Positions 4,031 to 20,971 of a stretch of DNA of 64,000 bases are shown here, one piece after another. A model generated the notes under the pieces. The model worked only from the letters and a program-made list of their open reading frames with translations, ran no database searches and had not been told where the DNA came from. Position numbers and translations under genes: made by a program. The first letter of the stretch is position 1; each line of letters begins with the position of its first letter. Origin of the DNA: Macrostomum hystrix (lineage: Eukaryota; Animalia; Platyhelminthes); contig CATNEN010000011.1 of the NCBI GenBank assembly GCA_950097015.1, positions 5,890,001-5,954,000 on the forward strand, given 5' to 3'.

Positions 4031-4070
4031 CTGAAATACTTGTTGCACTGATGCCTTTGCTGCTGCTGCT
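4031..4070 (-). pseudogene. 3' part of the host exon interrupted by the Polinton
   Basis: After removing the element and one TSD copy, the frame of ORF 20961-21227 continues as ...QQQQQQRHQCNKYF and ends at donor AG|GTGAAA (4031/4030). This is in phase with exon 3526-2792. Confidence 0.45.
4065..4070. repeat. Left 6-bp target-site duplication GCTGCT
   Basis: Identical to 20966-20971. A 6-bp TSD is typical of Polintons. The exact register is slightly ambiguous because the target is a (GCT)n run. Confidence 0.8.
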
Positions 4071-4214
4071 AGTAGTATAAAAAAATATGAAACAAACGCG
4101 TTTTCCTTATGGAGAAATACATAGGTAGTACCGCATAGGAAATGCCTATACATTTAACTCAAAACGCACCAAAAAATTTCTAAGTCCTAACTCGCACGAG
4201 GAATTTTCTAAGTC

Positions 4215-4251
<37 letters not shown>

Positions 4252-4375
4252 ATCTGTCCTTGGCATGTTGTTTAAAAAATTCCAAGTCCAACTAACTGCT
4301 CATTAAGTTTGCAGGTTAGAATTCAAAGGCGCAGCAACTTTCTGAAACGAGCATGTTGAATCAGTTTCATTGCAA
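4071..4375 (+). repeat. Left terminal inverted repeat
   Basis: Reverse complement of 20645-20965. The outer ~145 bp are nearly identical (I see 2 small differences). It then has a (CT)n tract and a more diverged inner ~130 bp. Confidence 0.95.
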
Positions 4376-4676
4376 GTTGCCACTGTCGAGAGTTAATGCA
4401 CGTCGAATTATTGAGATTGTTACTCTAACTCGCCAAATCATTCAGTCACAAAATGTTGTTACTTTCTTATTCATCAGATTCAGCACGAAGCTTTTCATTC
4501 CTGCAGCAATTTGTCTTTAATTTCGCACATGCTAAAAATCACACATCTCTTCAAACGTGCCTACCATTTACCGATAGTATATATATATATTTCAAGGATT
4601 ATAAGACAAACTACAACTTCAAGCTGGAATTAGCAAGGAATTGAATTGATATTGAATTGAATTGAATTGAATTGAA

Positions 4677-4988
4677 ATGAATTCTGTCAACCTTCCTATC
4701 GTCGGGATAATGCGAAGCCAGCAATCTATAATTCATCAGACGGAGATGAATAATCGTAAATGGGTGCAACTCGTCAAGCTCTTAACTGAGCTAGAAAGCT
4801 TTATCGAGGAGAGCTGGCCCGAGGACACGATATCTGCAACAAGAAAGCGCGGCTACTGGCTGAAGTGCGTTATACGCAGTGCAGCTCGACAAGTCAGGAC
4901 ATGGGCCTCGACACGACTAACCTGGTGGCGTAGCCGACTAGAATTCCAAGTCGAAGCCTGGCAGAGTATCCAGTCACAGCTTAATTAA
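4677..4988 (+). CDS. Possible small orphan ORF of the Polinton (103 aa)
   Basis: ATG-initiated ORF inside an otherwise AT-rich region, preceded by (TA)n, TATAAG (4600) and an (AATTG)n run. No recognisable motif. Confidence 0.3.
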   Translation: MNSVNLPIVGIMRSQQSIIHQTEMNNRKWVQLVKLLTELESFIEESWPEDTISATRKRGYWLKCVIRSAARQVRTWASTRLTWWRSRLEFQVEAWQSIQSQLN

Positions 4989-5886
4989 TTAAGAAATGAC
5001 AAAAATCAACATTTTTATAATTTTGCATTACCTCAATAACTGAATTTTATCAAAGTTTGTAAATATATTTATGCTTTACATCAATACAAAAAAAAAGATT
5101 TTCTTTCTGCTCAAAACATACTTGTTGTGTAATTCTAGCGTGGCTTGTCAATAAATTATTTAAAACTAAGCTTTGTGTTTGAGAAACCATTTTGCTAAAT
5201 TATCTAAAATTATACCGAAACAACGCTCGTAATATCTTAACCTAGCTATGTATATCTAAAGCCAATCTGTTTACTATAAACGTACCGACTTAAAACTGAA
5301 ATCGAAAAAACTCGTATAATTTAAAATTATGTTTTCGACTGGTATATCAAACATTTTATCGTCAACAACTATATGCGTAATCAGTATGCTTCAGTTCATT
5401 ATAAAAATTAATTTAGTAAACTAAGATCTAAGTTCTCCCTCCCACACACCGTTCTCGCTAACTTAGTAAAATATCATGTTACTGAAAACCCACAAGCTTC
5501 TTTTAAGGCAGTACGTGTATTTAATTAACCCTTCAAAGTCAAGAAAATCTAGCTACAAAGATTTATACTATTCAAATTTTTCACTTGTGATGTTTACCGA
5601 ATGATGAAATTCAATAATTAAAGCTCTATACCTATGCAATCAAATCTTATCATTGCTACGTGCCGTCAAAATTGCTTTCAACTGTTGACTCAAATTACAT
5701 TTTAACCTATAGCAAATTAAATTAGTTTCCACATAAAAAGCTTCGTGCAGTTGCTATCAATAGATGAGCTTCAACAATTGACTATAATTTCCTTAATGAC
5801 TTTGACTTGTAAACAAATTAGTTTAATTTCTATCATAAAGCATCGTGCAGTTACTATCAGCAGGTGATTCGTGTTCGATTCGCTTC

Positions 5887-5894
5887 TATAAATA
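5887..5894 (+). promoter_or_regulatory. Canonical TATA box (TATAAATA) of the putative early unit
   Basis: Located 78 nt upstream of the ATG at 5965. It is preceded by a 23-bp direct repeat at 5737-5759 and 5837-5859. Confidence 0.55.
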
Positions 5895-5964
5895 CAAGTT
5901 TCAAAATTTTGGTCTTTTCATAAGCTCCTCGGCTTTCTAATCACTACACCAGCTAGCAGCAAGA

Positions 5965-7288
5965 ATGTCTTACTACGCAGCCGAATCACTGCTAAAGCCT
6001 AACATGAGACCTATCTTCCACATTGGCGAGATTGAGTCGACAGTCAACGGTTCGTGTCTGTTTCGATCGGTGGGTTGGAAGTCAGGTCCAGAGGCAAAGG
6101 GCTGGCACCCGATCATCTTCCAGTCCGCCGGTCCAGTTGAGCTACTTCGAGGCATCACCGAGCGAGCGGAATACGAGACAGCTAGCAAGTATGACTCACG
6201 CGATGTCATCGGCATAACGTTTAGAAAGGAGTGTTGTGATCAGGATTTAGTCGACTGCCTTCGGTGAGTATAATTATGTGTTTTACATTTCCTCATAAAG
6301 CTTGTATTTGTCAATAGTAACCTACCTCATAGTTCTTATAGCCAAATTATAGAGTCTAAGCAACAAAACTAAGACACGAAATTAAATTATGCATTTAATG
6401 GTTTATTATGCATCCACTCTGAATGGAACTAGAGTTTGTTCTCCCTACAACTAATATTTACCTTCAATTCAACCAGCATACAAGTGTACAGGTTATAATT
6501 TTGTAAATTGCTGCAGCTTTTTTATCTAGCGAATAATTTTTTCCTAAACTCAAGCAACGTCTAACTTGGATTTTAATCCTCTCTTTTTATCCAGAGTTAT
6601 CGAAAGAGGTCTCGAAGCTAAACTGCGTGAAATTGGCGATGCACGAACGTTAGCGCGACTAACGAAGACATTGTCAGATGAAGAGGTGCTGAATAATAGG
6701 CAGCAGCAGTGGATCACAATCAAGGCAGCATACCCGTGCGCCACCTTCATGGTGAATGAAGCAAATCCTGACGGAGTCGAAGTTCCGCTGGCCGACTTCA
6801 AGGGTTTGAGCGGAAAATATCTAGTCTCGCTTCAAGGAGTGAGTCTTTTCTCTCCGAAAGGTAGCATCACGTGGAGGTTAACCTTGTGTGTGCGTTCGAT
6901 AATTTTGATTAAGGAGACTCGTCCGACTCCCGATAACAGCATGTTGAGTATAGTGCATCAGCATATCAAGACTGCGATTGGTGAGCACAGAAGCTCTTCT
7001 TCATCCAGAGCCGCTTCACCAAACCCAGCCAACAAGCAGAAAGGCCACGTTCCCGCTCGAAGCCCATCACCAACCAAGAAGCCTGCTGCGAAGAAACGTT
7101 CCAAGCCGGTTACCAGCCCCGCAATCAAGACAAATAAGCGATCAAAGACGGCTACTGACAATAACGATTGGATTCAATCGCCACCAGCCAAGGCTTTGGT
7201 GAGTGCGCCGCAAGAAGGAAACCGAGTGGCGTCGAACTTAGACGATACAGACTCCGACTCTACTGATTCATTGTCTTCAGATGAGTAA
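5965..7288 (+). CDS. Spliced Polinton gene (exons 5965-6263 and 6595-7288, 330 aa); putative OB-fold ssDNA-binding protein
   Basis: Donor CG|GTGAGT (6263/6264), branch point CTAAC (6561-6565) and polypyrimidine tract plus CAG| (6594/6595) join the two listed ORFs in frame. The SSB assignment is an inference from a pattern resembling DUF2738/T7 gp2.5-like SSBs, an acidic C-terminal tail (DDTDSDSTDSLSSDE) and the position before PolB. Confidence 0.7.
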
Positions 7289-7297
7289 ATCATTATT

Positions 7298-8023
7298 GTG
7301 ACTCTTTGCAGGATAACTTCATTATTTGTATTTTTTTTATTTTACCATCCATACGCTCGTATAGGTCTTAATTATTTCGCACGCCACTCGGTTATTCCAA
7401 TTTTTTTATTAGCCGATAAAACTGAAAGCCCATTTTCACAAGTCCTTCCTTACTGTTTCCAGCGGCTTGTTCTCCTAATATTTAGCGCCAGTCTTCTAAA
7501 TCCTAGGCAATGTGAGAATTTCGATTTGAAGCTAATCGAGTTAATTTTACAATCAAAAGGTTGTGCTTGCAAATTATTTCGAAACAGACCAACTATGCTA
7601 AAGACGTGCTTTTCCAATCTAACTGTTCAGTTTTATCCGAGTGGCAAAATTTCAATATTTGGTTGCTTGTCAAATTGGCAATTAATTTGTGCTTTACGCT
7701 TTATTAATGATAACCTTTACGCAATAGATTTCGACTCAATCAGACTTCAAACCAGTACCTATGTAGGTTTTATTGATGATTTTTATTGGCCAAATAACTG
7801 TTTTCAGCTGCTAAAATCAATGATCGGTCATCACTCAAACTATAAAATATCATACGATGTTGAAAACTTTCCTCAAGCAGTTTCAATTCGATCAATTTCT
7901 AATCCTAGGCTTTTTTGTAACATATTTTTTTCAAAAAAATTTGTCATTATGGGTGTACGAGGAGAAAAAGATTTGCAATTCGTGCTCAGTCTTCTTAAAC
8001 ACGCGCTGCAATCAATCTGTTAA
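7298..8023 (+). CDS. TATA-binding-protein-like protein (two TBP repeats); true 5' end uncertain, core from ~7463
   Basis: Repeat 1 reads NFDLKLI...TVQFYPSGKISIFGC. Repeat 2 reads IRLQTSTYV...SYDVENFPQAVSIRSISNPRLFCNIFFSKKFVIMGV. These match TBP SYEPELFPGLIYRM..PRIVLLIFVSGKVVLTGA. There is no in-frame ATG before repeat 1. Confidence 0.8.
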   Translation: MTLCRITSLFVFFLFYHPYARIGLNYFARHSVIPIFLLADKTESPFSQVLPYCFQRLVLLIFSASLLNPRQCENFDLKLIELILQSKGCACKLFRNRPTMLKTCFSNLTVQFYPSGKISIFGCLSNWQLICALRFINDNLYAIDFDSIRLQTSTYVGFIDDFYWPNNCFQLLKSMIGHHSNYKISYDVENFPQAVSIRSISNPRLFCNIFFSKKFVIMGVRGEKDLQFVLSLLKHALQSIC

Positions 8024-8034
8024 TCTGTTAATCA

Positions 8035-8040
8035 AATAAA
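8035..8040 (+). terminator. Polyadenylation signal AATAAA after the TBP-like ORF
   Basis: It lies 12 nt after the stop. I found no AATAAA between the SSB-like stop and the TBP-like ORF. Confidence 0.45.
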
Positions 8041-8218
8041 CCCTTTAAACCAACAATATTTCTTTCATTTAAAAACAAAGTATCTATTATCCTTCCTCTC
8101 GTTTTTTTTTTAAAAAACTTTTATACCTAGTTTGTAAAACAATTACACATTTCAATTTTTTTTTCTATTCACTCATTAACTATTAACCTACTCATTTAAT
8201 TACAGCCATAATGATCAA

Positions 8219-11200
8219 ATGCCTCGAGCAAGGTGCAATGTTTGCCAACGCGTTTTCAGCGGTCAGGCGGAACTGCATGCACACTCGCATGGCGAGTGCT
8301 TTGCGCCTGAAAACCTGCTCTCTGCACCCATTAACCGTCTGACTAACAATCCTCCCAATGATTGGTCTGTTGTGCTACGCGAATCAAGCCACAAGGGACG
8401 TGTCAACTTTGTCGAATTCAGACCACAGCAACAACAGCGACTACCTAGCGAACTGATTGCCAATCTTCGAGAACCGATATACAACCTCTTTGAAAAGATT
8501 GGTTCAGCCGGTCTAATGCTGCGAACCTGTGTCCATCTGAAAGTGAAGTTATCTCGTCCAAAGTCAGAAGATGGTGAGAGTATCGAAACAATTTCTGCCT
8601 ACTTTAACACTAATATGGCAACAATAACATTTGACGAGACGACAATGGCAAATAGTGACTTGACTCTATCACCAGATGCATTCAATGACTGGTTTTCGCG
8701 CGTAATCTCCACTCTAGTAACAAAAATTGACAACTTCCAAACACGCGGTAGTAACTGGCAATTTGAGCACATTGAACAACTTGATCTAATGCTATGCATT
8801 TACCGCAAAACCAGAGCTCGATTAATCAATTCAACCGAGCTTGGAGGTGGCGGAGGAGCCGGCGGGGGGCCCGCCGCGAGGGCGGCGGGCGGGCGGGCGG
8901 GCGGGCGCGCGCGTGGCGACCCGTTCCGAACCGAACCGACCCGATCCGACCCGAAACGACAAGCCTTCAAGGTACCGATTTCTATTGGCCGAAAGACTGG
9001 TGCAGTCTTGTACTTGAAGCCGCACAGAGCTAATCAGTTGGATTGTTTTCGTTGGGCTATTATCGCGAGTGTGTTTCATCCTTACACAACGAACCCAAGT
9101 AAAAAGTCGAGCTATGCGCAGTGGCAGGGAGAGTTCAACTTTGGCCGATTCGCAAATGGACCAGCTAGGCATTCCAAATCATCGTATAGAAAGTTTTGCC
9201 GCAAGAATCCTAAGCTTAGTCTCCGTGTCTTTGTCTGGAATCATGAAGAAAAGACTAATACTCTCTTCTTTTCACATCGAAGCAACAGTGAAGGTGATAG
9301 GTATTTTGCCAATTGCTTGTTTGTACCGCGTTACGGACAATTTGCGTTGGGTCATTACATGCCAGTCAAGAATTTGAATCGTTTAATGAGTACACGCAGC
9401 AAACAACGGAGGTTTTGTCCCGACTGCCTAGTTTCTTTTCCATGCATCACTTCTTGGGATTATATTTTAAATGTGCATTCTTGTGTAAATAATAATAATG
9501 AAAAGTCCACTGCCATCGAAGAGTGGACTTCAGATGTTGTACCACAGATTCGCGAGACAAAGTATAAGCCAGTAGAAAGAATGCCACGAGAAGAGGATGC
9601 ACACGTCAAATTCAAGAGTTTTGAAGCTCAGCTACCGTCACTGTATGTCATGTATGCTGATATGGAGTGTCTTTGCGCGCCGCCAGACAAGCATCAGGCG
9701 GGTAATGTGCTTGAGGTGCATGAACCGATTTGTTTAGCCTATCGACTAGTAACTTGTCCAGAACTGAAATTGACGCCTCGCCTAAAGGCAGCTGTTGGCA
9801 TGAGCAGAGAGAAACCGTGTGAGGTGATTTACACACCGCCAAATGGTGAGAATTGTGTTAGACAATTTTTGCGGCGACTTGAAACGATTGCTAGCGAAAT
9901 TTGTCTACATACACAAAGTGAATCCTACACTCCACTTTTGCGCAAGTATTTACATCTAAGCAAGTCCAAGGCAGAGATTGCAGCGTGTCAATTGTGCAAG
10001 AAATCATTTGAAGAGGATGAAAAGAAGGTACTTGATCATTGTCACTTGACAGGTCTTCCACGTGGCGTGCTGTGTGTCTCTTGCAACAGGAAGTTGACTC
10101 TTAGGCGCTATCGTCTCATTGTTTATTTTCATAACTTAGCCTCGTATGATGGCAAGTTTCTAGTGCGAGAAATTTATGAAGTTTTTTCTGGATCCAAGGT
10201 TCAACTTCATGTGCTACCGGAGAATCGCGAGCGATTCAAGACATTTTCACTTAAGTTTCGTGTAAAGGCAGCTGATCAGACTCACAAGTTTGAAATTTGC
10301 TTCAAAGACACGTTTGCCTACTTGTCAACAAGCTTGTCAACATTGGCAGATCGTCTTCTTCCAGAACAGCTGGTACACACACGAGAACTAATGAATGCAT
10401 ACCCGAGGTTGAAGTTTTCAACTCTTCGTCAAAAGGGTGTCTATCCCTATTCGTTTCTAGACTGTGAGGAAAAGCTGGATAGTGTGACAAGTCTTCCACC
10501 CAAGGCATGCTTTTTCAACAAGCTTACGATGTCAGATTGTTTAGATGTGGACTATGAGCGAGCTCATGCGGCATGGTTCGAGTTTGACTGCAAAAACCTT
10601 AGAGATTATACAACCGCCTATCTTCAACTTGATGTTTTGCTCTTGTGCGATGTCTTTGAAAACTTTCGTCAGACAGCACAGCGAGAGTATGGTCTTGATC
10701 CTAGTCACTTTTTGGGTGCTCCAATGTTTAGCTTGGTAGCATGTTTGCGACAGATTGATCGACCGATTCAATTATTTACCGATGCTAGCATGTATGCTGA
10801 AGTTGAGCATTCGATTCGAGGCGGTTTCAGCTTTGGAACACGACACATAACAACGGCAAACAATCCGTGTGTCGAAGAATGCAGAAGGATCTTAGATCAG
10901 ACTGAAGCAGATTTTTCCAACATGCGACAGAATGCGCCTAGAGATACTTATTTGGCCTACTTGGATGCTAACTCATTGTATTCGAGCTGCATGATTCAAC
11001 CGCTGCCAGTTGGTGACTTTGCTTGGTTGTCACGTAGCGACTTGTCAGCGATTCCGTTTGACAGTCCTTCGGCAGACTATTTTGAGAATCCGACTGTAAA
11101 GAGCCGATTATTGAACTGGTTGGTAAACTATTGCAAAGAGGACCAAGGAGCCATGCTTACAGTTGATTTGTATTATCCGCATTTTCTACATGACAGTACT

Positions 11201-12358
11201 GCTGATTTGCCCCTAGCCATTGCACACGAAATGATTGCCGAAGAGCGACTAACAGATCAGATGAAGGCAGACTGGTTTAGTCTTCAACGTGAACTTAATC
11301 CTGAGCGATATAAGAATGCAACATGCTATGAAGACGTAAAACCATTCAAGAGCCCTACGCGAAAGTTGATTGGATCAGTGCAGCACAAGTTGAAGTATGT
11401 TGTCCACCATCGAGCTCTTAGATTTTACCTAGAGTTAGGTATGCGCGTGACGCGTGTTCATCGTGTGATTCGCTTTACCGAGCTGGCCATTTTAAAAACC
11501 TACATTGAGCGCAATATTGATCAACGAAAAGCAGCTAAGACAGAGTTTGAGAGAGAGTTTTTCAAGCTGCTAAATAATGCTCTCTTTGGCAAGTTTCTGC
11601 AACGAGTTCGCGATCGTCTCATTTACAGAATGTGTTCACTTGCAGAACGGTTTGAGTGCTATATTGGAAGCGCCAACTTTCTGGATGCTATTGTTTATAC
11701 AGAAAGCCTTGCTGGAGTCTCCCTTGCATCAAAGCGTGTAATGTTGGACAAGCCAATTATTATAGGAGCTGCAATTTTGGACATTGCAAAAACTCTAGTT
11801 TATGAGTTTTTTTACAACCATGTTCAATCGCATCGATCACTAGCCAGTGCGCGCGTTCTCGGCGGTGATACGGATAGTCTAATGTTAGCACTTGTAATGC
11901 GACGAAACAATGAGACACCGTACGAGACGCTGTTTAAAGACTTGGCTGAACAAGGTCTCTTGGATACTAGCAACTATCCACCATCGCATCCGTTATACTC
12001 TACAGTCAACAAGGGTAGACTGCTAGCCTGGAAGGATGAGTTCAAGGGACGTGTGCCTTTGGAGCTAGCTTTTCTTCGACCAAAGAACTATTCCTTCTTG
12101 GTTACTGGCGAGAGTATTACACAAATTTCGCGATGTAAGGGTGTCTGCAAAACTGTTGCTCAAAACATTCGCCACACAGATTATCTAAGAGTTCTACACA
12201 AGCGCCAAGTCATGTTTGCACGAATGCAAAGCATCAGATCCCGCAAACAACGCGTGTTTCTACTGCAGCAACGCAAATTGGCCTTGAGTTTTTTTGATAC
12301 TAAGCGCGCGTGGATTAACGACTATAGTTCGCTGCCATTTGGTCATTGGCGTTTGTAA
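8219..12358 (+). CDS. polB: Protein-primed family B DNA polymerase (pPolB) with N-terminal C2H2 finger and endonuclease VII-like Zn insert
   Basis: Exo motifs YADMEC, FHNLASYDG and YLQLDV. Pol motifs YLDANSLY, KLLNNALFGK and GDTDS. CQLC...DHCHLTG..RG..C..CN insert. DCFRWAII and GHY motifs of the N-terminal OTU-like region. Confidence 0.97.
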   Translation: MPRARCNVCQRVFSGQAELHAHSHGECFAPENLLSAPINRLTNNPPNDWSVVLRESSHKGRVNFVEFRPQQQQRLPSELIANLREPIYNLFEKIGSAGLMLRTCVHLKVKLSRPKSEDGESIETISAYFNTNMATITFDETTMANSDLTLSPDAFNDWFSRVISTLVTKIDNFQTRGSNWQFEHIEQLDLMLCIYRKTRARLINSTELGGGGGAGGGPAARAAGGRAGGRARGDPFRTEPTRSDPKRQAFKVPISIGRKTGAVLYLKPHRANQLDCFRWAIIASVFHPYTTNPSKKSSYAQWQGEFNFGRFANGPARHSKSSYRKFCRKNPKLSLRVFVWNHEEKTNTLFFSHRSNSEGDRYFANCLFVPRYGQFALGHYMPVKNLNRLMSTRSKQRRFCPDCLVSFPCITSWDYILNVHSCVNNNNEKSTAIEEWTSDVVPQIRETKYKPVERMPREEDAHVKFKSFEAQLPSLYVMYADMECLCAPPDKHQAGNVLEVHEPICLAYRLVTCPELKLTPRLKAAVGMSREKPCEVIYTPPNGENCVRQFLRRLETIASEICLHTQSESYTPLLRKYLHLSKSKAEIAACQLCKKSFEEDEKKVLDHCHLTGLPRGVLCVSCNRKLTLRRYRLIVYFHNLASYDGKFLVREIYEVFSGSKVQLHVLPENRERFKTFSLKFRVKAADQTHKFEICFKDTFAYLSTSLSTLADRLLPEQLVHTRELMNAYPRLKFSTLRQKGVYPYSFLDCEEKLDSVTSLPPKACFFNKLTMSDCLDVDYERAHAAWFEFDCKNLRDYTTAYLQLDVLLLCDVFENFRQTAQREYGLDPSHFLGAPMFSLVACLRQIDRPIQLFTDASMYAEVEHSIRGGFSFGTRHITTANNPCVEECRRILDQTEADFSNMRQNAPRDTYLAYLDANSLYSSCMIQPLPVGDFAWLSRSDLSAIPFDSPSADYFENPTVKSRLLNWLVNYCKEDQGAMLTVDLYYPHFLHDSTADLPLAIAHEMIAEERLTDQMKADWFSLQRELNPERYKNATCYEDVKPFKSPTRKLIGSVQHKLKYVVHHRALRFYLELGMRVTRVHRVIRFTELAILKTYIERNIDQRKAAKTEFEREFFKLLNNALFGKFLQRVRDRLIYRMCSLAERFECYIGSANFLDAIVYTESLAGVSLASKRVMLDKPIIIGAAILDIAKTLVYEFFYNHVQSHRSLASARVLGGDTDSLMLALVMRRNNETPYETLFKDLAEQGLLDTSNYPPSHPLYSTVNKGRLLAWKDEFKGRVPLELAFLRPKNYSFLVTGESITQISRCKGVCKTVAQNIRHTDYLRVLHKRQVMFARMQSIRSRKQRVFLLQQRKLALSFFDTKRAWINDYSSLPFGHWRL

Positions 12359-12698
12359 TTATATTGATTGCTGTAATTACATCACCCAATGTTGACTTTC
12401 GCTTTAATCATATCAAATGATTTTTCCTTTTTGTGATTTGTATTTCATTCTTGTCAATATAGACATTGATCAAATTATGATTACATTTGAATGTTGTAAT
12501 TATATTGGTGACATTATAAGTATTTATATAATCCAAGTTTGTGTATTTATCTTTAGTTAATTTTTGTAGTACTTAGCTTAGGTATATCACAATCACTAGC
12601 AAGTTTTTGGAGATAATAAATAGATTATAATCAGGATTTAGTTATACTACTTTGTAAAACGCTAACAACCATTTTCCCCTCAGCTCTAAAGTTCTGCA

Positions 12699-13157
12699 AT
12701 GGCAACTGATAGCAACGTCCTGCGTGTGAGGCTTCTTCTGCCAACAGCTAATGTTCCAGTTCGCAAAACTGAAGGCTCAGTTGGCTATGATCTGACTGCT
12801 GCTGTCGAGGGAAGTGTTGGAGGCTACGATCGCCTAACGATTCGAACAGGCGTATCGATTCAAGTACCAAAGGACACCTACGGGAGAATCGCTACGCGCT
12901 CCAGCCTCAGCACAAGAGGCATCACTGTTGAAGGTGGTGTAGTTGATCCGGATTACACGGGCGAAATAATGGTTGTGTTGTACAATCACAGTCCAAATGA
13001 CTTTAATTTTTACCCCGGACTGCGCATTGCTCAACTAATTTTAGAGAAAGCAAGCATTGTACCTGTTTTAGTTTTAGAGGATGAGTCAGTCTGTCACATG
13101 ACTGAACCGTCACTCAAGCGCAAGTATGGTGGGTTTGGTAGCACTGACAACTTTTAG
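12699..13157 (+). CDS. dut: Trimeric dUTPase
   Basis: All five motifs are present: GSVGYDL, RSSL, GGVVDPDYTGEI, RIAQLI and RKYGGFGST. Confidence 0.97.
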   Translation: MATDSNVLRVRLLLPTANVPVRKTEGSVGYDLTAAVEGSVGGYDRLTIRTGVSIQVPKDTYGRIATRSSLSTRGITVEGGVVDPDYTGEIMVVLYNHSPNDFNFYPGLRIAQLILEKASIVPVLVLEDESVCHMTEPSLKRKYGGFGSTDNF

Positions 13158-13249
13158 CGCTGCGAATAATGACACTAATCATATTTTTGTCTCCAATTAT
13201 TATATTCTTGATGTTAATCTTGTTCTTTTTCTTGTTTTTGTTAATACAC

Positions 13250-13255
13250 TATAAG
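13250..13255 (+). promoter_or_regulatory. TATAAG motif 43 nt before the PLA2 gene ATG
   Basis: Same motif and spacing as at 15457 and 17989. Confidence 0.5.
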
Positions 13256-13292
13256 CTAATTCGGAATTTGTTGGTAATTTAAAATCTCCAGA

Positions 13293-13709
13293 ATGGCACG
13301 TAGTAAGAAAAGATCAGCTAAGAGTTTAAGAAAGTCATCATTTCAAATCAAGAGATCAAGTAACTCGATTAAGAAGCAGCGAGGTTTCGGCGTACTGAAC
13401 TGGTTAATCAATCATTTGCCGTTTGAGGCACATTTACCTGGCGGATATCAGTTTTGCGGTCCAGGAACGAAGTTACAAGAGAGACTTACAAAGGGTCAAC
13501 GAGGTAAAAATAGACTTGATAATCTGTGCATGCTTCACGACATAGCGTACGATCAACATTCTGACGTTCAAGAAAGATTAAAGGCTGACCAGGTGCTAGA
13601 ATCAGGAGCACGTGAAATTGCTAACGATCCGTCCACAAGTTGGAGTGAGAAACTAGCTGCCAAACTTGTAACTAAAGTTATGCAGGTGAAGCAACGCTTT
13701 GGTGCTTAG
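13293..13709 (+). CDS. Parvovirus-type phospholipase A2 domain virion protein
   Basis: HLPGGYQFCGPGT Ca-binding loop and LDNLCMLHDIAY catalytic HD motif, with a basic N-terminus. Confidence 0.92.
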   Translation: MARSKKRSAKSLRKSSFQIKRSSNSIKKQRGFGVLNWLINHLPFEAHLPGGYQFCGPGTKLQERLTKGQRGKNRLDNLCMLHDIAYDQHSDVQERLKADQVLESGAREIANDPSTSWSEKLAAKLVTKVMQVKQRFGA

Positions 13710-13711
13710 AA

Positions 13712-14416
13712 ATGGAAATTTTCAACATGCAGTTGGCTCACGATTCAACATTCATTATTGCGGGGCCGTCTAACTCTGGAAAAACTGAATGGACACTTAG
13801 ATTGCTAAGTGAACGAGATAAGCTATTTGATAAGAAACCTCAGCGTCTTCTTTGGTGTCATGGTACAAACCTAACTTCCGACGATCAGCAACGAATAATC
13901 AAGTGTTGGAATAAATCTGGAGATGAACCTGTTCATTTCGTAAATGGATTTCCAGCTCAACTGGCTTCTCGGTTTAAGCCAAACGATCTAGTTGTCGTTG
14001 ATGACCTGCAAAGTGAAGTGACGAAGTCTGCTGAGTTTACTAGCCTGTTTACAAAGCTTGCCCATCATACACCACTCACGTGTCTTTATATTTGTCAGAA
14101 CCTCTTTAATCGATCAGATCCTGAGGCGCGTACGCGAAGTTTATCAGCTAGTTATATTTGCCTAACTCGTAGTGTTCGAGATCGTGCATCAGTTGAGCAT
14201 CTAGCTCGGCAAATGTTTCCACGCAATAGTCGGTTTTTAGTAAATGTATATGAAGATGTAACAAATAATAAGCCATACTCCTATTTGTTCATCGATTTGC
14301 GTCAAAAAACGCCAGATTTTTTACGACTTCGCACAGGTATTTTTCCTGGTGATTGTCATATTGTATACATACGTTCTTCCGAAGCTGGTGTTTCAAACGC
14401 TATAAGCGATTTTTGA
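13712..14416 (+). CDS. A32/FtsK-like genome packaging ATPase
   Basis: Walker A IIAGPSNSGKT, Walker B VVVDDLQ, and downstream Polinton-type CQN and YSYLFIDL motifs. Confidence 0.95.
   Translation: MEIFNMQLAHDSTFIIAGPSNSGKTEWTLRLLSERDKLFDKKPQRLLWCHGTNLTSDDQQRIIKCWNKSGDEPVHFVNGFPAQLASRFKPNDLVVVDDLQSEVTKSAEFTSLFTKLAHHTPLTCLYICQNLFNRSDPEARTRSLSASYICLTRSVRDRASVEHLARQMFPRNSRFLVNVYEDVTNNKPYSYLFIDLRQKTPDFLRLRTGIFPGDCHIVYIRSSEAGVSNAISDF
14401..14406 (+). promoter_or_regulatory. TATAAG motif 62 nt before the minor capsid ATG
   Basis: TATAAGC at the end of the ATPase ORF. Confidence 0.35.
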
Positions 14417-14462
14417 TTTGTACGCTTGATTAATATTTTCGCGCATAAACTTATTTTTGAAA

Positions 14463-15461
14463 ATGAGCTTCTACGTAACATTACCTTCGAACGATACTAG
14501 CTATTCAGATAATTCTCCGAATTATTTTCGAATAAGATTGGCTGAGCCACTCAACTTGTCAGCTGGTTTGTACGAAGTTGCTCTAGTAGAGTTACTCTGT
14601 CGTGGAGCAAATACAACACCGAATGCTCATCGAGAAAGACAATTTGAAGTTCCATACTATGTTAATGTTGAACCAATTTTTGCATCGTCTGTTCCTATTT
14701 GGAAACGTATTTGGGCTGAGGCTGATTTGGAAGCCTACGTTTCTTGGCGAGCTGCTGGATCAATAGAAAGGTTTTCATGGTTTCTGCGCAATGCTGGCGA
14801 AAAAGCGCTTGGAATTGAGCTACCCGCCGCATTTATGGATACCTATCAGTTCAACTCTTGGAAGATAATAACGACTCTAACGTCTGACCTTTCAACGGAG
14901 CCTACAAACGCAAGTTTTCAACCGGCAGATGGGAATTATAAAGATCTTATTAAGAATTCCGTAAAGTCTCTGGTAATTCCTTCGGATCAATTTTTTACAT
15001 TCTATTTTATTCTTCTTCCTGGCCAGGCAATGCGACTCGTTTCAGACGATGTCGAACTGATAAGTACTAGTGATGATAATGCAATATTTCATATGCTCCG
15101 ATATTGGCGAGCTAGACGATTGTGGTGTTTCAAAAAGACCTACTTGGATAGTAATTTGACTCGTCCAATTTCATCAAAAACAGTTTACATGTACTGCTAT
15201 ACCGATATAATCGAACATCAGGCTGTTGGAAGCACTGCAGTCCAATTGCTCCGTGTAGTGGAACTTCAGCAAAAGAAGGACGGCGAACTTACTCGCGAAA
15301 GCAGCACATTCCAAAAGTCATATTACCTAAAAACCAATCGTCAGCGAATAAGTGAGATTGGTATTCGCCTTTCGGATCAGCGTGGACAGGAATTCAATTT
15401 TCATTCGGAGGCGCATGTAGTTGTCGTGCTTCATTTTCGTCTGCGGTCTGATGGTATATAA
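14463..15461 (+). CDS. Minor capsid protein (penton, single jelly-roll; Polinton PX)
   Basis: Typical N-terminus SFYVTLPSN...NYFRIRL..PLNL...YEVAL and C-terminus YCYTDII..Q.VG....LLRVV...IGIRLSDQRG...F. The ATG at 14463 is preferred over the TTG at 14457. Confidence 0.9.
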   Translation: MSFYVTLPSNDTSYSDNSPNYFRIRLAEPLNLSAGLYEVALVELLCRGANTTPNAHRERQFEVPYYVNVEPIFASSVPIWKRIWAEADLEAYVSWRAAGSIERFSWFLRNAGEKALGIELPAAFMDTYQFNSWKIITTLTSDLSTEPTNASFQPADGNYKDLIKNSVKSLVIPSDQFFTFYFILLPGQAMRLVSDDVELISTSDDNAIFHMLRYWRARRLWCFKKTYLDSNLTRPISSKTVYMYCYTDIIEHQAVGSTAVQLLRVVELQQKKDGELTRESSTFQKSYYLKTNRQRISEIGIRLSDQRGQEFNFHSEAHVVVVLHFRLRSDGI

Positions 15462-15462
15462 G
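15457..15462 (+). promoter_or_regulatory. TATAAG motif 42 nt before the ATG at 15499
   Basis: Overlaps the penton stop codon. Spacing matches 13250 and 17989. Confidence 0.45.
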
Positions 15463-15498
15463 CAAATGTGAATTTCTAAAAGAAGCTCATTTCTTGCC

Positions 15499-15930
15499 AT
15501 GACTACCATTACTGAAAACATAAAGCGAAGTGCTCAGTCGCTATCTCAGTGTGCATTTGTTTTACAAGCTGTAAGCCGTCTGAGAAATCCAAAACATCGA
15601 AAAAGCTTTTTGAAAACTCTAACAGAAGCAGAGATTCGCTGTCTAGTGGAGTTTCTGCTAAACATTGTCAACGGACGTGTTCAAGTGAGTTCCTGCAACA
15701 AGACCCGGCTTGAGAAACATAGCAAGTATATCAAAAAGCTATTAAAAAGAGAGACTCCACTTGGTGAGAAAAGAAGAATCCTTGTACAGCACGGTGGGTT
15801 TTTACCGTTCTTGGCTCCTATCATTGCCGCTCTACCTGCTATAGGCACAGCGTTAGGAATTACTTCTGGTGTTGTTGGAACTGCCGCCGGTGCAGCAAAC
15901 TTAGTTAGAGCAATTCAGCGAAAAAACTAA
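15499..15930 (+). CDS. Conserved Polinton small virion protein with QxGGF motif and hydrophobic/amphipathic C-terminus (possible membrane-lytic peptide)
   Basis: The pattern CLVEFLLNIVNG...RRILVQHGGFLPFLAPII resembles a recurrent Polinton ORF. The function is an inference. Confidence 0.7.
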   Translation: MTTITENIKRSAQSLSQCAFVLQAVSRLRNPKHRKSFLKTLTEAEIRCLVEFLLNIVNGRVQVSSCNKTRLEKHSKYIKKLLKRETPLGEKRRILVQHGGFLPFLAPIIAALPAIGTALGITSGVVGTAAGAANLVRAIQRKN

Positions 15931-15932
15931 AC

Positions 15933-16616
15933 ATGCAGTCTCGAAATGCGAATGAACTACAGCGAATGTTTCTGATTCCTGAAAGCATGTATCAATCAAT
16001 GCAACAGAGACAGGACGAAATACTATCAAGCAGCTTAGTACGTAAAACAGATGCTCTGGAGACACCGCGAGATGTACTAGCAAAGAATATAGTTTCAATG
16101 CGAGAAGAAATTGATGCTCTAGATGATGTAATTGAAAAGCAGCCCTCCTCTACAGCTCAACTGAAAAGATCTGACTTGGAGAGTAAATTGTTAAAGTCAC
16201 GTAGAGTCTACCACACTGGAGTGGAAAGACCAGCACCTGTTCGCGAAAGTTTTTCAAGTCAATTCGAAATGCAAGATCGAATGCAAATTCCTAAGGCTTT
16301 CCGCTCTCGGCTGGATAGACTCGCTAAAAATCTATTCTCAAACGATTCATCGTTGGAACCTCTACCCGAAGATTTTTCTGAAAATGAAATTCAAGATTTA
16401 ATGGAATATATTGTTCGTGATAAACCGCTAAAGCGAAACGAAAAAGAACCTCCAATCGGTCTTCAACATTTCCTTGAATTTCTTCGGAAACGAGGCGTTA
16501 CAGCTAGCCAAGTCGGTCGTCATGTGCGAAAGGAGTTTGAGACTGCCATTGCTGAGGAACCTGAGGTGAACCTCGAAGATTTAAGTCTGCTCGAAAATTA
16601 TCAGAGAGATGTTTAG
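15933..16616 (+). CDS. Polinton hypothetical protein (227 aa)
   Basis: Clean ATG ORF tightly packed 2 nt after the previous stop, with an N-terminal MFLIP motif and helical content. AATAAA follows at ~16673. Confidence 0.7.
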   Translation: MQSRNANELQRMFLIPESMYQSMQQRQDEILSSSLVRKTDALETPRDVLAKNIVSMREEIDALDDVIEKQPSSTAQLKRSDLESKLLKSRRVYHTGVERPAPVRESFSSQFEMQDRMQIPKAFRSRLDRLAKNLFSNDSSLEPLPEDFSENEIQDLMEYIVRDKPLKRNEKEPPIGLQHFLEFLRKRGVTASQVGRHVRKEFETAIAEEPEVNLEDLSLLENYQRDV

Positions 16617-16845
16617 TATAAGCGTGCTTTTAATTATTGTATGGTATAATGCATTATTGACACTTGATAATTAATAAATTTGTAAGTCATGAGCTGTTCA
16701 AACCTAAGAGTTTTGTTGCAGAGTTTCTTTGATTATTTGCAGCTAGAAACTTGCTGTCCGCTCATATTTAACTCCTGCTTTGAAAGCGAGACAACCGACG
16801 GTGATTCAGTTATCGACGTAAGCTTCATTTGCTGCAATACAATCA

Positions 16846-17997
16846 ATGCAAGGAATACGTAAAAGTATTGCTCAGTTTCTATCTGATTCTTTCTTCAACT
16901 TGGAAAATCCGACTTCGTTCTCAGGTAATAGATCTGAACTTGTTCGTGCTGTGCGCAAAGAATTTCCACAGATAAAATATGAAGACGCACGAAAGGAAGT
17001 ACAAAGTTGGGTACGATCAACAAAAGAGCACCATTTATTTCAAAAGTTGCCTAAAAAATTTCTGACACCAAAAATTAGTGTACCACCCGTGGCACGATTC
17101 CAGTTTCAAATCGATTTAGCCGACCTGCCGCAGTATAAAACTGAAAATCGAGGTTATCGTTTCATACTAGTTCTAATTGACTGCTTCACGCGAAGCATTC
17201 GACTTAGGCCATTAAAGACAAAGAAACCTAGCGAAGTGAGTCGAGTGCTGCAAGATATTTTTCGAAGTGGTTTCAAACCAGTTTATTTACAAGGCGACGC
17301 AGGCATGGAGTTTCTTGGAAAATCAACGCGACAAATGCTAAAACAGGAGGGAGTGAGGTTTTTCGTTTCTCAAAGTTCCTACAAGGCTAGCCTGGCAGAA
17401 AGATTTATTCGATCTCTAAAAGAACGCCTGCAACGATACTTTCGAGCTAAGAATCTAGCACGTTGGTTTGACATATTGCCACAGTTGGAGAAAAATTTCA
17501 ACGCAAGTCCACATCGAGCTTTAAGTGGAGAAACACCGAAACGAGTAGAGAATGATGAACATCTTCAAGGAATTCTATGGGACAAAATGTTTACACAAGT
17601 GCGCACTTCAAAACCAAAATTCAAAGTTGGTGATTGGGTGCGAATTCTCCGACGACGAGGAATTTTTGAAAAGGGTTACACAACAATTTGGAGCAATTCA
17701 AAGTTTCGTGTTCATCATGTTCACCTGTCTGACCCGCCAATGTATGAATTAGCTGATTCAGAAGATAATTTCGATTTGCTAGAAGGAAGATTCAACGAGG
17801 ATGAACTTCTACTCGTGAATGAAGTGGATGAGGAACCTGTCGATATAGAAAAGGTTCTCGAAACAGATCGTTCGCAGAAGGGTAATCGTTTGTATTTAGT
17901 AAAGTGGAAAGACATGCCAATTTCACGGAGTCAGTGGCTGAGTGAAAAAGATCTCGATGCAAAGACTGCTAGACTGTTTGCTCGTGTGTATAAGTAA
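16846..17997 (+). CDS. Retroviral-like DDE integrase with C-terminal chromodomain
   Basis: QIDLAD (D1), QGDAGMEF (D2), AERFIRSLK (E), KFKVGDWVRI, and chromodomain IEKVL...YLVKWKD...SQWL. Confidence 0.97.
   Translation: MQGIRKSIAQFLSDSFFNLENPTSFSGNRSELVRAVRKEFPQIKYEDARKEVQSWVRSTKEHHLFQKLPKKFLTPKISVPPVARFQFQIDLADLPQYKTENRGYRFILVLIDCFTRSIRLRPLKTKKPSEVSRVLQDIFRSGFKPVYLQGDAGMEFLGKSTRQMLKQEGVRFFVSQSSYKASLAERFIRSLKERLQRYFRAKNLARWFDILPQLEKNFNASPHRALSGETPKRVENDEHLQGILWDKMFTQVRTSKPKFKVGDWVRILRRRGIFEKGYTTIWSNSKFRVHHVHLSDPPMYELADSEDNFDLLEGRFNEDELLLVNEVDEEPVDIEKVLETDRSQKGNRLYLVKWKDMPISRSQWLSEKDLDAKTARLFARVYK
17989..17994 (+). promoter_or_regulatory. TATAAG motif 42 nt before the core-protein ATG
   Basis: Encoded in the last two integrase codons. 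Spacing matches 13250 and 15457. Confidence 0.45.
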
Positions 17998-18030
17998 AGC
18001 TGAAAAACTGATATCGCTTAATAATAAGTC

Positions 18031-18465
18031 ATGGATCCGATATTCGCCTTCTATTCCGGTCCAAATAATTCAATCGGTGGACGAGGAGCATCTGCAATCC
18101 CCGTCTACGAAGGATACGGATTCCTATCAAACTTGGCTGAAAGACTGCTATTTCCTGTAATACGTAATGCTAAAAAGGATCTTCTGGATCGCAGCCTAGA
18201 TTATTTTAAAAGCGCTGCCAGCAAAATCGGTATGGGGCGCAAGCGGCACGCGAACTCAACTTCTGAAGAAGACATGTTTGACACGCCTACCTTAACCAAC
18301 AAGCGACGAAAGAGAGCAGCTAGACCTATAAGCTTAAGACGTAAAGGAAAAAAACGAGGTGTAACAAGACGACGAGGAGGACGAAGTACCTACAGAGTCA
18401 AGAAACGAAGAGGAAAGCAAAACTCCGCTGCAAGCAAGAAGCTTTTTAGTTTATTCGGAAAATAA
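18031..18465 (+). CDS. Arg/Lys-rich putative DNA-condensing core protein
   Basis: Gly-containing N-terminus and a very basic C-half (RRKGKKRGVTRRRGGR). It lies directly before the major capsid gene. Confidence 0.75.
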   Translation: MDPIFAFYSGPNNSIGGRGASAIPVYEGYGFLSNLAERLLFPVIRNAKKDLLDRSLDYFKSAASKIGMGRKRHANSTSEEDMFDTPTLTNKRRKRAARPISLRRKGKKRGVTRRRGGRSTYRVKKRRGKQNSAASKKLFSLFGK

Positions 18466-18466
18466 C

Positions 18467-19789
18467 ATGAATCAACTTCTCGGTCCCGACATTGCTGCAT
18501 TGAAAAGCGAACTCTCTCTCTTTGACCAGACACCTGTTCAATTCAGTGTTTTAGAAAGTCGCTACACAGACATTCAACCACAACATGGGATAACAAAAGG
18601 TTCTCCAATCGAGTTTGAGATTGTACCGCCTGGAGATCTGTATTTAGATCTGCATGATACTGTGCTAACAGTTAGCTTCCGCGTCAGCGACGGAGAAGGT
18701 AACGCAATTGATGCTGCAAAAAACTATGTGTGTGTAAACAACTTAGCAATCGCAACATTGTTTGAAGATGTGCAATTTACTATTGGAGACACTGTTGTTG
18801 AAGGTGGAAGCTTCATGTATCCCTACAAGGCAATGCTTCTAACACTTCTTGAGTATGGACACACAGCACAGAAGTCAGGTCTGGTGCCTTGGGGTTTCTA
18901 CAAAGATACTGCTGGTAAAATGAATTCAACAAACGATAACGAAGGACGAACGAAGAGGCGATCGTTGATTGCTGAAAATCGACATTGTACAGTGTCTGGT
19001 CCTCTATTTTTAGATCTTTTTCGTCAACCGCGATATCTACTTTCAAAGACACCAATGCGTATCAAATTAACACCAGCAAAAAGCAAATTTGTTTTGAGTG
19101 GTGCATCAATAGGAAGCGATGTGCAACTTAAAGATTATGAAATTAGGTTCTTGCGAGCAGAATTACGACTGCGACTTGTCCAACCATCACCTAGCGTTAC
19201 TAGTGCTCATGCACATGGTCTGAAAAGCCACAATGCTCTATATCCCCACCGGAGTCTAAGCATGGGAACATTTACTATTCCTCGCGGATCATCCAGCCAC
19301 ACGCACGAGAATTTATTCCCAAGTGGAGTTCCACGGCTTTTATTATTAGCTTTTGTAAATAACCGAGCATTCAATGGAAGCATGGACACGAATCCATTCA
19401 ACTTTGAGCATGCTAACGTTAACAGCATCGGTGTGTTTGTAAATGGAGAGTCAATGCCATGTCGACCGCTGCAAACCAACTTTGAAGGTGACTGTGTGAC
19501 AGAGTATACTTTTCTTCTACAGCAACTGGGTCTTTATCTGCAAGGACGTGACATTGGTTTCACTATGGGTGAATATGCGAATGGATACTCTATTTTTGCC
19601 TTTAGTCTCGGTAGTGAACCAGGTATCGGACATGGTGTTCAACTGTATAAGGAAGGAAATGTGAAAATTGAGCTGCGATTCAGTTCTGCAACTAGCACTG
19701 TGTACAACGTCATATTTGGAGGAATTTTTGACAAGCAATTGCAACTAACTGAGCTTCGTGACGTTGTTCCTGGAACTGCATGGAAGTAA
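18467..19789 (+). CDS. Major capsid protein (double jelly-roll; Polinton PY)
   Basis: ELSLF...Q...Y..I.P...PIEF.I...YLDL..T.L, VNN..ATLF, YPYKA, LFRQPRYL, NPFNF and YSIFAF motifs in a 440-aa ORF. Confidence 0.95.
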   Translation: MNQLLGPDIAALKSELSLFDQTPVQFSVLESRYTDIQPQHGITKGSPIEFEIVPPGDLYLDLHDTVLTVSFRVSDGEGNAIDAAKNYVCVNNLAIATLFEDVQFTIGDTVVEGGSFMYPYKAMLLTLLEYGHTAQKSGLVPWGFYKDTAGKMNSTNDNEGRTKRRSLIAENRHCTVSGPLFLDLFRQPRYLLSKTPMRIKLTPAKSKFVLSGASIGSDVQLKDYEIRFLRAELRLRLVQPSPSVTSAHAHGLKSHNALYPHRSLSMGTFTIPRGSSSHTHENLFPSGVPRLLLLAFVNNRAFNGSMDTNPFNFEHANVNSIGVFVNGESMPCRPLQTNFEGDCVTEYTFLLQQLGLYLQGRDIGFTMGEYANGYSIFAFSLGSEPGIGHGVQLYKEGNVKIELRFSSATSTVYNVIFGGIFDKQLQLTELRDVVPGTAWK

Positions 19790-20349
19790 TTGATTCTATT
19801 CTACAAAACGGTGTTACAGATCGATTTCTTCGGTCTATTGCTACAAAACTGTGCGCTTATTTTTCGCATGCTGTCTTCTTAGGAGTATTCCCCCAAGATT
19901 TTGTATTAAGTATTAAGCATCTTCCACTTAATGAAAAGGATTATTTTTTTATTGTAAACACAGACACTTCTAATCTACCTGGAAAACATTGGGTTTGTGT
20001 TTGGGTGCATGGAAATACGTCCTATGCAGGTCGACAGGGTAAAAGATATGGAGAATATTTCGATTCACTTGGACTCCATCCGATTGCATCTGTGGCACGT
20101 TGGTTAGGAATACAATGTGGTGGGGCAAGAAATTGGAGTTATACTCGCTTTGCTGTTCAAGACCCTCGAAGCGGTAGCTGTGGCTTTTGGGCTGTATTTT
20201 ATGTCTTTTATAAATTGACTATTCGAAAAACTCTGCACGTCTTTCTAAAGAGTATTTCTAAGCGCAATGTCTCGCGAAGTGATTCTTTCCGAAAAGCCTA
20301 TGTTAAACTGCGATCTTTTGTTTTACGAATTTTAATTCATTATCTGTGA
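19780..20349 (+). CDS. Adenain-like (C5 family) cysteine maturation protease
   Basis: FLGVFPQD, VNTD...PGKHWVC (His), EYFDSLG (Asp) and Q...SGSCG (Gln, Cys). Confidence 0.96.
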   Translation: MEVIDSILQNGVTDRFLRSIATKLCAYFSHAVFLGVFPQDFVLSIKHLPLNEKDYFFIVNTDTSNLPGKHWVCVWVHGNTSYAGRQGKRYGEYFDSLGLHPIASVARWLGIQCGGARNWSYTRFAVQDPRSGSCGFWAVFYVFYKLTIRKTLHVFLKSISKRNVSRSDSFRKAYVKLRSFVLRILIHYL

Positions 20350-20965: not shown

Positions 20966-20971
20966 GCTGCT
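20966..20971. repeat. Right 6-bp target-site duplication GCTGCT
   Basis: Identical to 4065-4070. Confidence 0.8.

Follow-up and report, generated by a model that had tools for sequence, protein, structure and literature searches.

Polintons (Mavericks) are regarded as related to the ancestors of many double-stranded DNA viruses of eukaryotes, and to our knowledge transcription machinery is absent from their core gene set. TATA-binding proteins (TBPs) encoded by viruses are known mainly from giant viruses. Here we analyzed a 64,000-nucleotide stretch of the Macrostomum hystrix genome (contig CATNEN010000011.1, positions 5,890,001 to 5,954,000; hereafter the window, whose numbering is used throughout), in which a Polinton carries a TBP-like coding region directly upstream of the gene for its protein-primed DNA polymerase B (pPolB). 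This region, probably the terminal exon of a spliced gene, encodes a conserved, highly divergent two-repeat core that is predicted to adopt the TBP fold.

In human TBP, the residues that kink DNA are Phe193/210 and Phe284/301, one pair per lobe with a spacing of 17 residues (PMC3142196), and two acidic residues of the C-lobe, C.L3.2 and C.L3.4, contact TFIIB/TFB (PMC7221094). Viral TBPs are nearly always paired with a viral TFIIB-like partner (PMC7221094). TBP-like genes also appear sporadically in other algal mobile elements (PMC10675990), and a gene labeled “TBP” is shown for midsize eukaryotic linear double-stranded DNA (MELD) viruses whose PolB is adintovirus-like (Starrett et al. 2021, PMC8502044, Fig. 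5 legend). The latter resembles our case in being a TBP-like gene of a midsize virus-like element of the PolB/integrase type; it is a figure label without analysis in a section on non-animal datasets, and the two are compared by description only. Unlike it, the family described here comes from a flatworm genome, appears to be spliced and lies in synteny with pPolB. For this broad class of elements, the presence of a TBP-like gene as such is not entirely new, and the view of the initial annotation that the canonical Polinton gene set has no basal transcription factor has to be tempered by that label. New are the conserved family in flatworm elements, its spliced structure, a probable dual product and the residue pattern; full-text literature searches retrieved no paper analyzing a Polinton TBP. 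A functional analogy is provided by the KSHV (Kaposi’s sarcoma-associated herpesvirus) ORF24 family, the late-gene TBP mimic of beta- and gammaherpesviruses, which reportedly directs host RNA polymerase II (Pol II) to viral promoters that contain a non-canonical TATA-type element (PMC7498053, PMC12529657). The architecture of these proteins differs, and no sequence or structural match to them was seen here.

Judged by sequence profiles and a structural model, the C-terminal 186 codons (7463-8020) of an open frame of 241 codons (7298-8023, plus strand) are a genuine, complete and highly divergent two-repeat TBP core. The open reading frame (ORF) matched the Pfam TBP family PF00352 in two stretches, with 29.8-30.9 bits against a cut-off of 22.9 (E = 5.4e-7), in line with the initial annotation, which had recognized both repeats in the translation and placed them in a Polinton. 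The latter placement is borne out by the terminal inverted repeats (TIRs), pPolB and integrase of the element, within which the core exon lies 195 nt upstream of pPolB.

Searched exhaustively with HMMER, 1.84 billion representatives yielded five proteins at E ≤ 1e-3, four of which are relatives (P0002-P0005, 41-47% identity). The fifth and only match outside the family is a canonical-type TBP (P0006, E = 5.5e-4), and no metazoan TBP paralogue among these representatives matched more closely. Word-indexed protein searches with the 241-aa ORF, and with exon 2 plus the tail that follows it, gave no matches, and the family profile detected no further relatives in viral contigs of IMG/VR or in metagenome contigs of JGI. 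The relatives used for comparison are L001, on the M. lignano contig NIVC01000084.1, and L002-L006, on short contigs from Logan assemblies and ENA metagenomes; they represent the M. lignano element and four to five further divergent elements. The TBP-like gene is missing from the NCBI annotation of the M. lignano contig and from the protein databases.

All six family members matched PF00352 (best E = 3.2e-8). A search of the Protein Data Bank (PDB) with the window ORF as a single sequence gave weak TBP matches (best E = 0.006); the six-member family profile retrieved 35 distinct TBP sequences with both repeats aligned (E = 9.4e-7 to 6e-3) and only two non-TBP matches, both at E > 0.5. Alignment of the family against P0006 by hhalign gave 95.4% probability over 157 columns. 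The AlphaFold2 model of the core, a prediction from a five-sequence alignment, has a mean pLDDT of 88.7 and a pTM of 0.73, and presents the order S1-H1-S2-S3-S4-S5-H2 twice. Structural similarity search of this model using Foldseek showed that the 44 best PDB matches are all TBPs, aligned over the full length with TM-scores of 0.67-0.74 (E = 1e-8 to 7e-6) at an identity of 17-23%, the first non-TBP in the list having a TM-score of 0.31. The predicted core thus shares the two tandem lobes and the saddle fold of eukaryotic and archaeal TBPs. Among viral predicted structures, the best matches were TBP-like proteins of giant viruses (TM 0.6-0.69, E = 5e-9 to 1e-5), so that the model matches cellular TBPs slightly better than viral ones. 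The core resembles these Nucleocytoviricota proteins, such as the putative TBP of Heterosigma akashiwo virus, the B263R homologue of Abalone asfa-like virus and the Terrestrivirus TBP, in being a virus-type two-lobe protein, and also in keeping the nucleic-acid-binding aromatic signature while other surfaces diverge (PMC7221094). Compared to giant viruses, the carrier is a 17-kb integrating element that encodes no RNA polymerase, and a TFIIB-like gene was not detected among the Polinton ORFs scanned.

The TBP core exon is under purifying selection, and its position is conserved across elements whose pPolBs are as little as 46% identical. The TBP-like sequence of L001 is 56% identical to that of the window and lies in an element with the same gene order. 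Homologues stand directly upstream of pPolB, or of a deoxynucleoside kinase (dNK) followed by pPolB, in L001, L003, L005 and L006, and L002 and L004 are partial; the relative contigs that are long enough have the order TBP-like gene, dNK, pPolB, with pPolBs 46-47% identical to that of the window. Between copies, synonymous divergence (dS) is saturated (> 3.8 in pairwise comparisons), nonsynonymous divergence (dN) is 0.23-0.56, and dN/dS is at most 0.06-0.14. The core frame is uninterrupted in 7/7 copies, as opposed to the breakage in most sister copies that, by the initial annotation, would have spoken against the gene, and 39 columns of the family alignment are invariant. These data contradict the idea of a non-functional passenger, be it a decaying fragment of a captured host TBP or a chance ORF. 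Such a passenger would account for the missing start codon, the AT-richness and the very divergent sequence, yet it is most improbable given intact copies across saturated dS at this dN/dS, the invariant columns, a confident fold prediction and the conserved position and splice signals. Moreover, the TBP exons of L001 are intact while at least four neighboring genes show frame changes.

The accessory genes around this module differ between elements. A dUTPase lies downstream of pPolB in the window and in L001; instead of it, L002, L003, L005 and L006 have the dNK between the TBP-like gene and pPolB, so that one module contains different nucleotide-metabolism accessories.

As the initial annotation had seen, the TBP exon is more AT-rich than its neighbors. 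Its GC content is 0.34, and 0.29 at third codon positions (GC3), against 0.45-0.52 in the neighbors, with a like contrast in all relatives. In every copy examined for GC3 (window 7463-8020, L001 8478-9032 and the core exons of L002-L005) the exon has a value of 0.28-0.41, compared to 0.39-0.79 in pPolB, dNK and the exons upstream within these elements.

Further analysis of the DNA-contacting residues revealed an aromatic residue at each of the four kink positions. P0006 has Phe at all four, with the same 17/17 spacing as human TBP; the family has F, F, F, Y, Y and Y at core position 39, an invariant Tyr at 58, and invariant Phe at 136 and 155, with a spacing of 19 residues in both lobes. Therefore, the S2-S3 hairpin (stirrup) of either lobe exceeds its canonical counterpart by two residues, and the insertion in the lobe-1 stirrup includes an invariant Arg-Pro. 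The initial annotation was right about the Tyr of repeat 1 (in YPSGK, here Y58) and about the two Phe residues of repeat 2 (F136 and F155). Its proposal that Pro had replaced the first Phe of repeat 1 (NRP for KRF) results from an alignment without a gap: HMMER, MAFFT and hhalign agree in placing F39 (Phe or Tyr in the family) opposite the first canonical Phe, and because these three methods and the 19/19 aromatic spacing concur, Arg-Pro is read as the two-residue insertion.

The four positions aligned to Asn (S1 and S1') and Thr (S4 and S4') of P0006, which we take to be the polar residues that hydrogen-bond the center of the TATA box in TBP-TATA crystal structures, are all replaced, by Leu or Gln at S1, Phe, Tyr or Leu at S4, Thr or Ser at S1' and Met at S4'. 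In the C-lobe, the stirrup keeps the motif Glu-x-Phe-Pro-Gln. The Glu aligned to the second TFIIB-contacting acidic position, mapped here to C.L3.4, is invariant, and the residue two positions earlier is Asp in the window and L001 and Asn or Ser in the other four copies. The flatworm core thus resembles cellular TBPs in the four kink aromatics and the Glu-x-Phe-Pro stirrup, and differs from them in its 17-23% identity, the 19-residue spacing, the invariant Tyr in place of one Phe and the replaced Asn/Thr positions; in addition, its gene belongs to a mobile element, and no metazoan TBP paralogue comes near its divergence. The paralogue TLF/TRF2 (TBPL1) is about 40% identical to the TBP core (PMC3142196), compared to about 20% for the Polinton core; by analogy, the latter might combine a TBP fold and altered DNA recognition with continued use of TFIIA/TFIIB (PMC3142196).

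The core is basic (pI 9.1), and this charge together with the aromatics at all four kink positions suggests a DNA-binding, DNA-bending saddle. Its sequence preference would probably be unlike that of host TBP, since the Asn/Thr positions are replaced, one Phe is Tyr and the stirrups are two residues longer. The idea of altered specificity or dominant-negative behavior in the initial annotation keeps a basis here, namely the Asn/Thr-aligned positions and the longer stirrups, but not in the residues that it had named. The dominant-negative variant would be a decoy without productive DNA binding that titrates host TFIIB, TFIIA, NC2, Mot1 and TAF1 and so reprograms host transcription in favor of the element. 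The loss of every canonical Asn/Thr residue and the altered stirrups fit such a decoy, as does the invariant C-lobe Glu aligned to a TFIIB contact (PMC7221094), and TLF/TRF2, which binds TFIIA and TFIIB and not TATA, is a precedent (PMC3142196). We nevertheless consider a decoy unlikely: the aromatics at the kink positions, three of them invariant, and the basic core are the nucleic-acid-binding signature of TBP lobes (PMC7221094), and at 17-23% identity most partner surfaces of the N-lobe are not recognizably conserved.

The initial annotation took the 241-aa ORF for a free-standing gene, which does not hold. Its “start” at 7298 is a GTG that is valid only under the bacterial code of the ORF lister, its first ATG is codon 103, inside repeat 1, and its similarity to L001 begins exactly at codon 56 (nt 7463). 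The first 55 codons are read as intron, and the core as a terminal exon without a start codon. In 7/7 copies the core starts right after a polypyrimidine tract and (C/T)AG, and the in-frame sequence before this acceptor resembles a translated pyrimidine tract; in L001 the acceptor AG falls within an in-frame TAG, and the first 43 conserved codons contain no start codon.

An upstream ORF (6566-7288) has homologues in L001, L003 and L004. In the 4/4 copies that reach that far, a donor GT(A/G)AGT stands at the same codon boundary, directly after the motif D-W-x-x-x-P-P-x-K-x-L. The lengths of intron 2 (264, 350, 715 and 805 nt) span all residues modulo 3, yet every junction is in frame, including that of L001, where the upstream ORF and the TBP ORF lie in different frames. 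The Val-Ser at the donor is spelled GTRAGY in all four copies, which has a probability of ~2e-4 from each copy’s own codon usage, a value that treats synonymous sites as independent and is roughly justified by the saturated dS. The donors fit the cis-donor motif GT[G/A]AG of M. lignano (PMC8629364). Joining the three exons (Table 1) gives an uninterrupted ORF of 487 aa in the window and 517 aa in L001. An earlier candidate, splicing from 7199 to the “ttgcag” at 7311, was rejected as it shifts the frame into an early stop. The N-terminal 230 aa have no match in Pfam and no PDB profile match, and the single-sequence AlphaFold2 model of this domain is unusable (pLDDT 46.7). A motif TATAWAW was found upstream of element genes only in front of exon 1.

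A different mode of expression would be trans-splicing of the host spliced leader (SL) at 7462|7463, by which the 3'-terminal ATG of the leader would serve as start codon of a 187-aa TBP-only protein; the upstream ORF with its acidic tail would then be a complete gene, and the TBP exon a downstream cistron of a polycistronic transcript. The SL of M. lignano indeed ends in ATG (PMC8629364), and all reported flatworm SLs have a 3' ATG that can serve as start codon (PMC12582326). In 7/7 copies the core frame continues from the acceptor in phase 0. The motif [T/C]TNCAG of trans-acceptors is matched in the window, L003 and L004, whereas the acceptors of L001, L002 and L005 do not fit it. Consistent with two cistrons are the conserved tail with its exon-like GC content, the distinct composition of the TBP exon and the location of all element genes on one strand. 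However, the window and L001 have no poly(A) signal in the interval from the tail stop to the acceptor of exon 3, and SL-type acceptors precede 1/9 of the other element genes, which is background. On the sequence evidence we rank cis-splicing first, because the upstream GTRAGT donor is conserved at one codon boundary beyond codon-usage expectation and because an acceptor with an upstream cis donor is expected to be cis-spliced (rule cited in PMC8629364); the SL route is a secondary, though by no means negligible, possibility.

Besides the cis-spliced product, a second one is probably made. The frame that reads through the donor of intron 2 to the stop at 7286-7288 is open in 4/4 copies, with 41-48% identity, and the rest of intron 2 is AT-rich; intron retention would thus yield a 330-aa protein ending in an acidic, Ser-rich tail.

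In addition, the window element and L001 share an acceptor-like TTACAG|CC a short way upstream of the pPolB start (window 8200-8218; L001 ~9185-9200), a hint that cis-splicing or SL addition may likewise occur in the pPolB mRNA.

We propose that exon 3 is cis-spliced to exons 1 and 2 to give a 487-aa protein, in which an N-terminal domain and a basic linker resembling a nuclear localization signal precede the TBP core. If this fusion model holds, the protein would resemble cellular TBP in having a variable N-terminal extension before a core of ~180 aa. It would recognize promoters for the element that encodes it and thereby recruit host TFIIB and Pol II to that element’s own genes. This role seems the likeliest because of the invariant Glu at the TFIIB position, the Asp two residues earlier in the window copy and the absence of a detected TFIIB-like gene: none of the scanned element ORFs matched a TFIIB or cyclin-type family, the N-terminal 230 aa being not classifiable. 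We hold this reading as a whole with about even confidence; the late-gene activator and the hijacker of host TFIID/TFIIB that the initial annotation had suggested are hypothetical roles. A more elaborate and considerably more tentative version is that alternative splicing of one early gene produces two regulators with a shared N-terminal domain, one ending in an activator-like acidic tail and the other in a TBP saddle re-tuned to an element-specific core promoter, to which it would recruit host TFIIB and Pol II.

Several points weigh against the cis-spliced promoter-recognition factor. The tail after the donor is conserved and exon-like, so that the upstream ORF could be a complete separate gene, and the host SL ends in ATG, in frame at the acceptor. 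The GC3 of the TBP exon (0.29) is odd within one mRNA whose exons 1 and 2 have 0.51-0.58, and every isoform is deduced from sequence alone. DNA binding and TFIIB contact come from alignment only; the choice of F39 over R42 as first aromatic depends on the alignment, and the strand pattern of the model leaves a small doubt about it. Upstream of the element genes, the search for target motifs gave no conserved candidate. Finally, the family is tiny, with 4 clusters among 1.84 billion representatives, and a host is identified for only one relative (L001, M. lignano).

One promoter candidate, TTTGTAAAAC, shared upstream of pPolB and dUTPase, was discarded, being no commoner than in shuffled sequences and not conserved in L001.

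The element is 16,894 bp long and bounded by TIR arms of ~460 nt, the outer 165 nt of which are 94% complementary between the arms. Its left terminus reads (T)AGTAGTATA followed by an A7 run, a combination that creates TATAAAAAAATA in the window termini, seven bases from each end. The sequence (T)AGTAGTATA is present at both window termini (4070-4090 and 20943-20963) and in L001 (~2296 and ~21877), followed by A7 in the window as opposed to CG and T7 in L001. A further block, CCTTATGG-GAAATACATAG, is also kept between the two elements.

These termini bear on the view that the core is an architectural DNA bender, which would bend the AT-rich element ends for protein-primed initiation or end synapsis and have no role in transcription. 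The TBP-like gene always lies in a replication and nucleotide module, comprising the TBP-like gene, dNK in some copies and pPolB, with dUTPase after pPolB in the window, and TATAAAAAAATA occurs near the window ends, where (T)AGTAGTATA and an A7 or T7 run are shared with L001. On the other hand, L001 does not keep the TATA-like run in this form (TATACG, then T7), and the invariant Glu-x-Phe-Pro motif of the C-lobe resembles the TFIIB-binding stirrup. We know of no precedent for an origin factor with a TBP fold. A terminus bender therefore appears rather improbable.

A selected TBP core in a 17-kb element with no TFIIB found suggests that small elements can encode promoter recognition, probably acting via host TFIIB. 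If the dual-regulator version is true, Polintons would have their first demonstrated basal transcription factor, and a small integrating virus-like element would possess a promoter code of its own with neither an RNA polymerase nor a TFIIB. The family is also a natural, very divergent TBP, with longer stirrups, a kink Tyr and a replaced central read-out, and is useful for asking which features of TBP are essential. Moreover, the conserved introns and the likely dual product suggest that Polinton genes can have host-like, regulated structures that ORF-based annotation misses.

The gene set, the TIRs, the metazoan flanking genes and the M. lignano origin of the closest pPolB identify the element as a Polinton/Maverick in a metazoan, Macrostomum-like genome. 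All its recognized genes are on the plus strand, and every gene examined is open (Table 1).

Table 1. Features of the Polinton and of its TBP-containing gene in the window.
Feature	Positions	Strand	Evidence and remarks
Whole Polinton/Maverick	4070-20963	+	Inverted repeats; outer ends by register extension
Left TIR	4070-4528	+	Inverted-repeat search
Right TIR	20491-20963	-	Inverted-repeat search
TATAAATA	5887-5894	+	78 nt upstream of the exon-1 ATG; surrounding block conserved in L001, there TACAAATA
Exon 1 of the TBP-containing gene (predicted)	5965-6263	+	ATG at 5965; phase-2 end before GTGAGT; 43% identical to L001 7060-7350
Intron 1 (predicted), 331 nt	6264-6594	+	GTGAGT...CAG; L001 counterpart of 90 nt at the same codon position, phase 2
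Exon 2 (predicted)	6595-7198	+	Globular region, then basic Ser/Pro/Lys-rich linker (pI 11.9); ends in the invariant D-W-x-x-x-P-P-x-K-x-L
Intron 2 (predicted), 264 nt	7199-7462	+	GTGAGT...CCAG; donor and acceptor at the same codon boundaries in relatives
Read-through tail in intron 2, 29 codons and stop	7199-7288	+	Acidic, Ser-rich, exon-like GC; kept in four copies
Exon 3 (predicted), two-repeat TBP-like core, 186 aa and stop	7463-8023	+	Similarity, Pfam and model; lacks its own start codon
AATAAA, poly(A)-signal-like hexamer	8035-8040	+	12 nt after the exon-3 stop
pPolB, 1379 aa, with Endonuclease VII domain	8219-12358	+	PF03175, E = 1.3e-19; uninterrupted ORF
dUTPase	12699-13157	+	PF00692, E = 4e-29
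Candidate packaging ATPase ORF	13712-14416	+	Weak P-loop ATPase hints; AAA-type families at E = 0.05-0.3 only
rve integrase with C-terminal chromodomain, 383 aa	16846-17997	+	PF00665 and chromodomain match
ORF with weak hints of an Ulp1/adenain-type cysteine protease	19780-20349	+	E = 0.05

The pPolB is 72% identical to the M. lignano hypothetical protein P0001, its closest match among 5.8 billion proteins searched. Its Endonuclease VII domain occupies residues 575-626, and the protein also shows a weak hint of an N-terminal C2H2-like zinc finger and a Gly/Ala/Arg low-complexity stretch near residue 210. The integrase match to PF00665 (E = 4.6e-7, 30.5 bits) is just below the cut-off of 32.6, the chromodomain of the same ORF is above its own cut-off, and the protein is 77% identical to its L001 counterpart. 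The ORFs at 14457-15461 and 18467-19789 matched no family. Of the Polinton morphogenesis module, which comprises double and single jelly-roll capsid proteins, an FtsK-type ATPase and an adenain-like protease, sequence family scans of the element ORFs gave weak hints of the two enzymes (E = 0.05-0.3) and identified no capsid genes.

In L001 (9264-17719), at least four neighboring genes contain frame changes between tblastn segments, at least two in the pPolB homologue and at least one each in the homologues of the dUTPase, the ATPase-like ORF and the 15933-type ORF, and the three exons of the TBP gene are clean. These frame changes could be real decay or indels of the long-read assembly.

The element is inserted in a (CTG)n microsatellite that forms both flanks (4055-4069 and 20964-20978). 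A target-site duplication of any length up to ~12 bp, including the 6 bp typical of Polintons, is compatible with these (CTG)n flanks.

The flanking genes are metazoan and encode a DEG/ENaC channel, a rhomboid with EF-hand and TMEM206. Two ORFs (26387-27643 and 29254-30102), one matching the N-terminal and the other the C-terminal part of an amiloride-sensitive sodium channel (DEG/ENaC), are probably exons of one host gene beside the element. Dense minisatellites extend over 22841-45939, including a 31-bp unit repeated 130 times (33792-37832), a 34-bp unit repeated 48 times (30404-32019) and a 21-bp unit repeated 29 times (25195-25805), and this field accounts for the extreme GC and AT skews at 30-43 kb. 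Further downstream, two 535-aa ORFs for a rhomboid protease with EF-hand (55522-57129 and 59106-60713) lie ~3.6 kb apart and contain the same nested ORFs; they represent a recent tandem duplication of a host gene.

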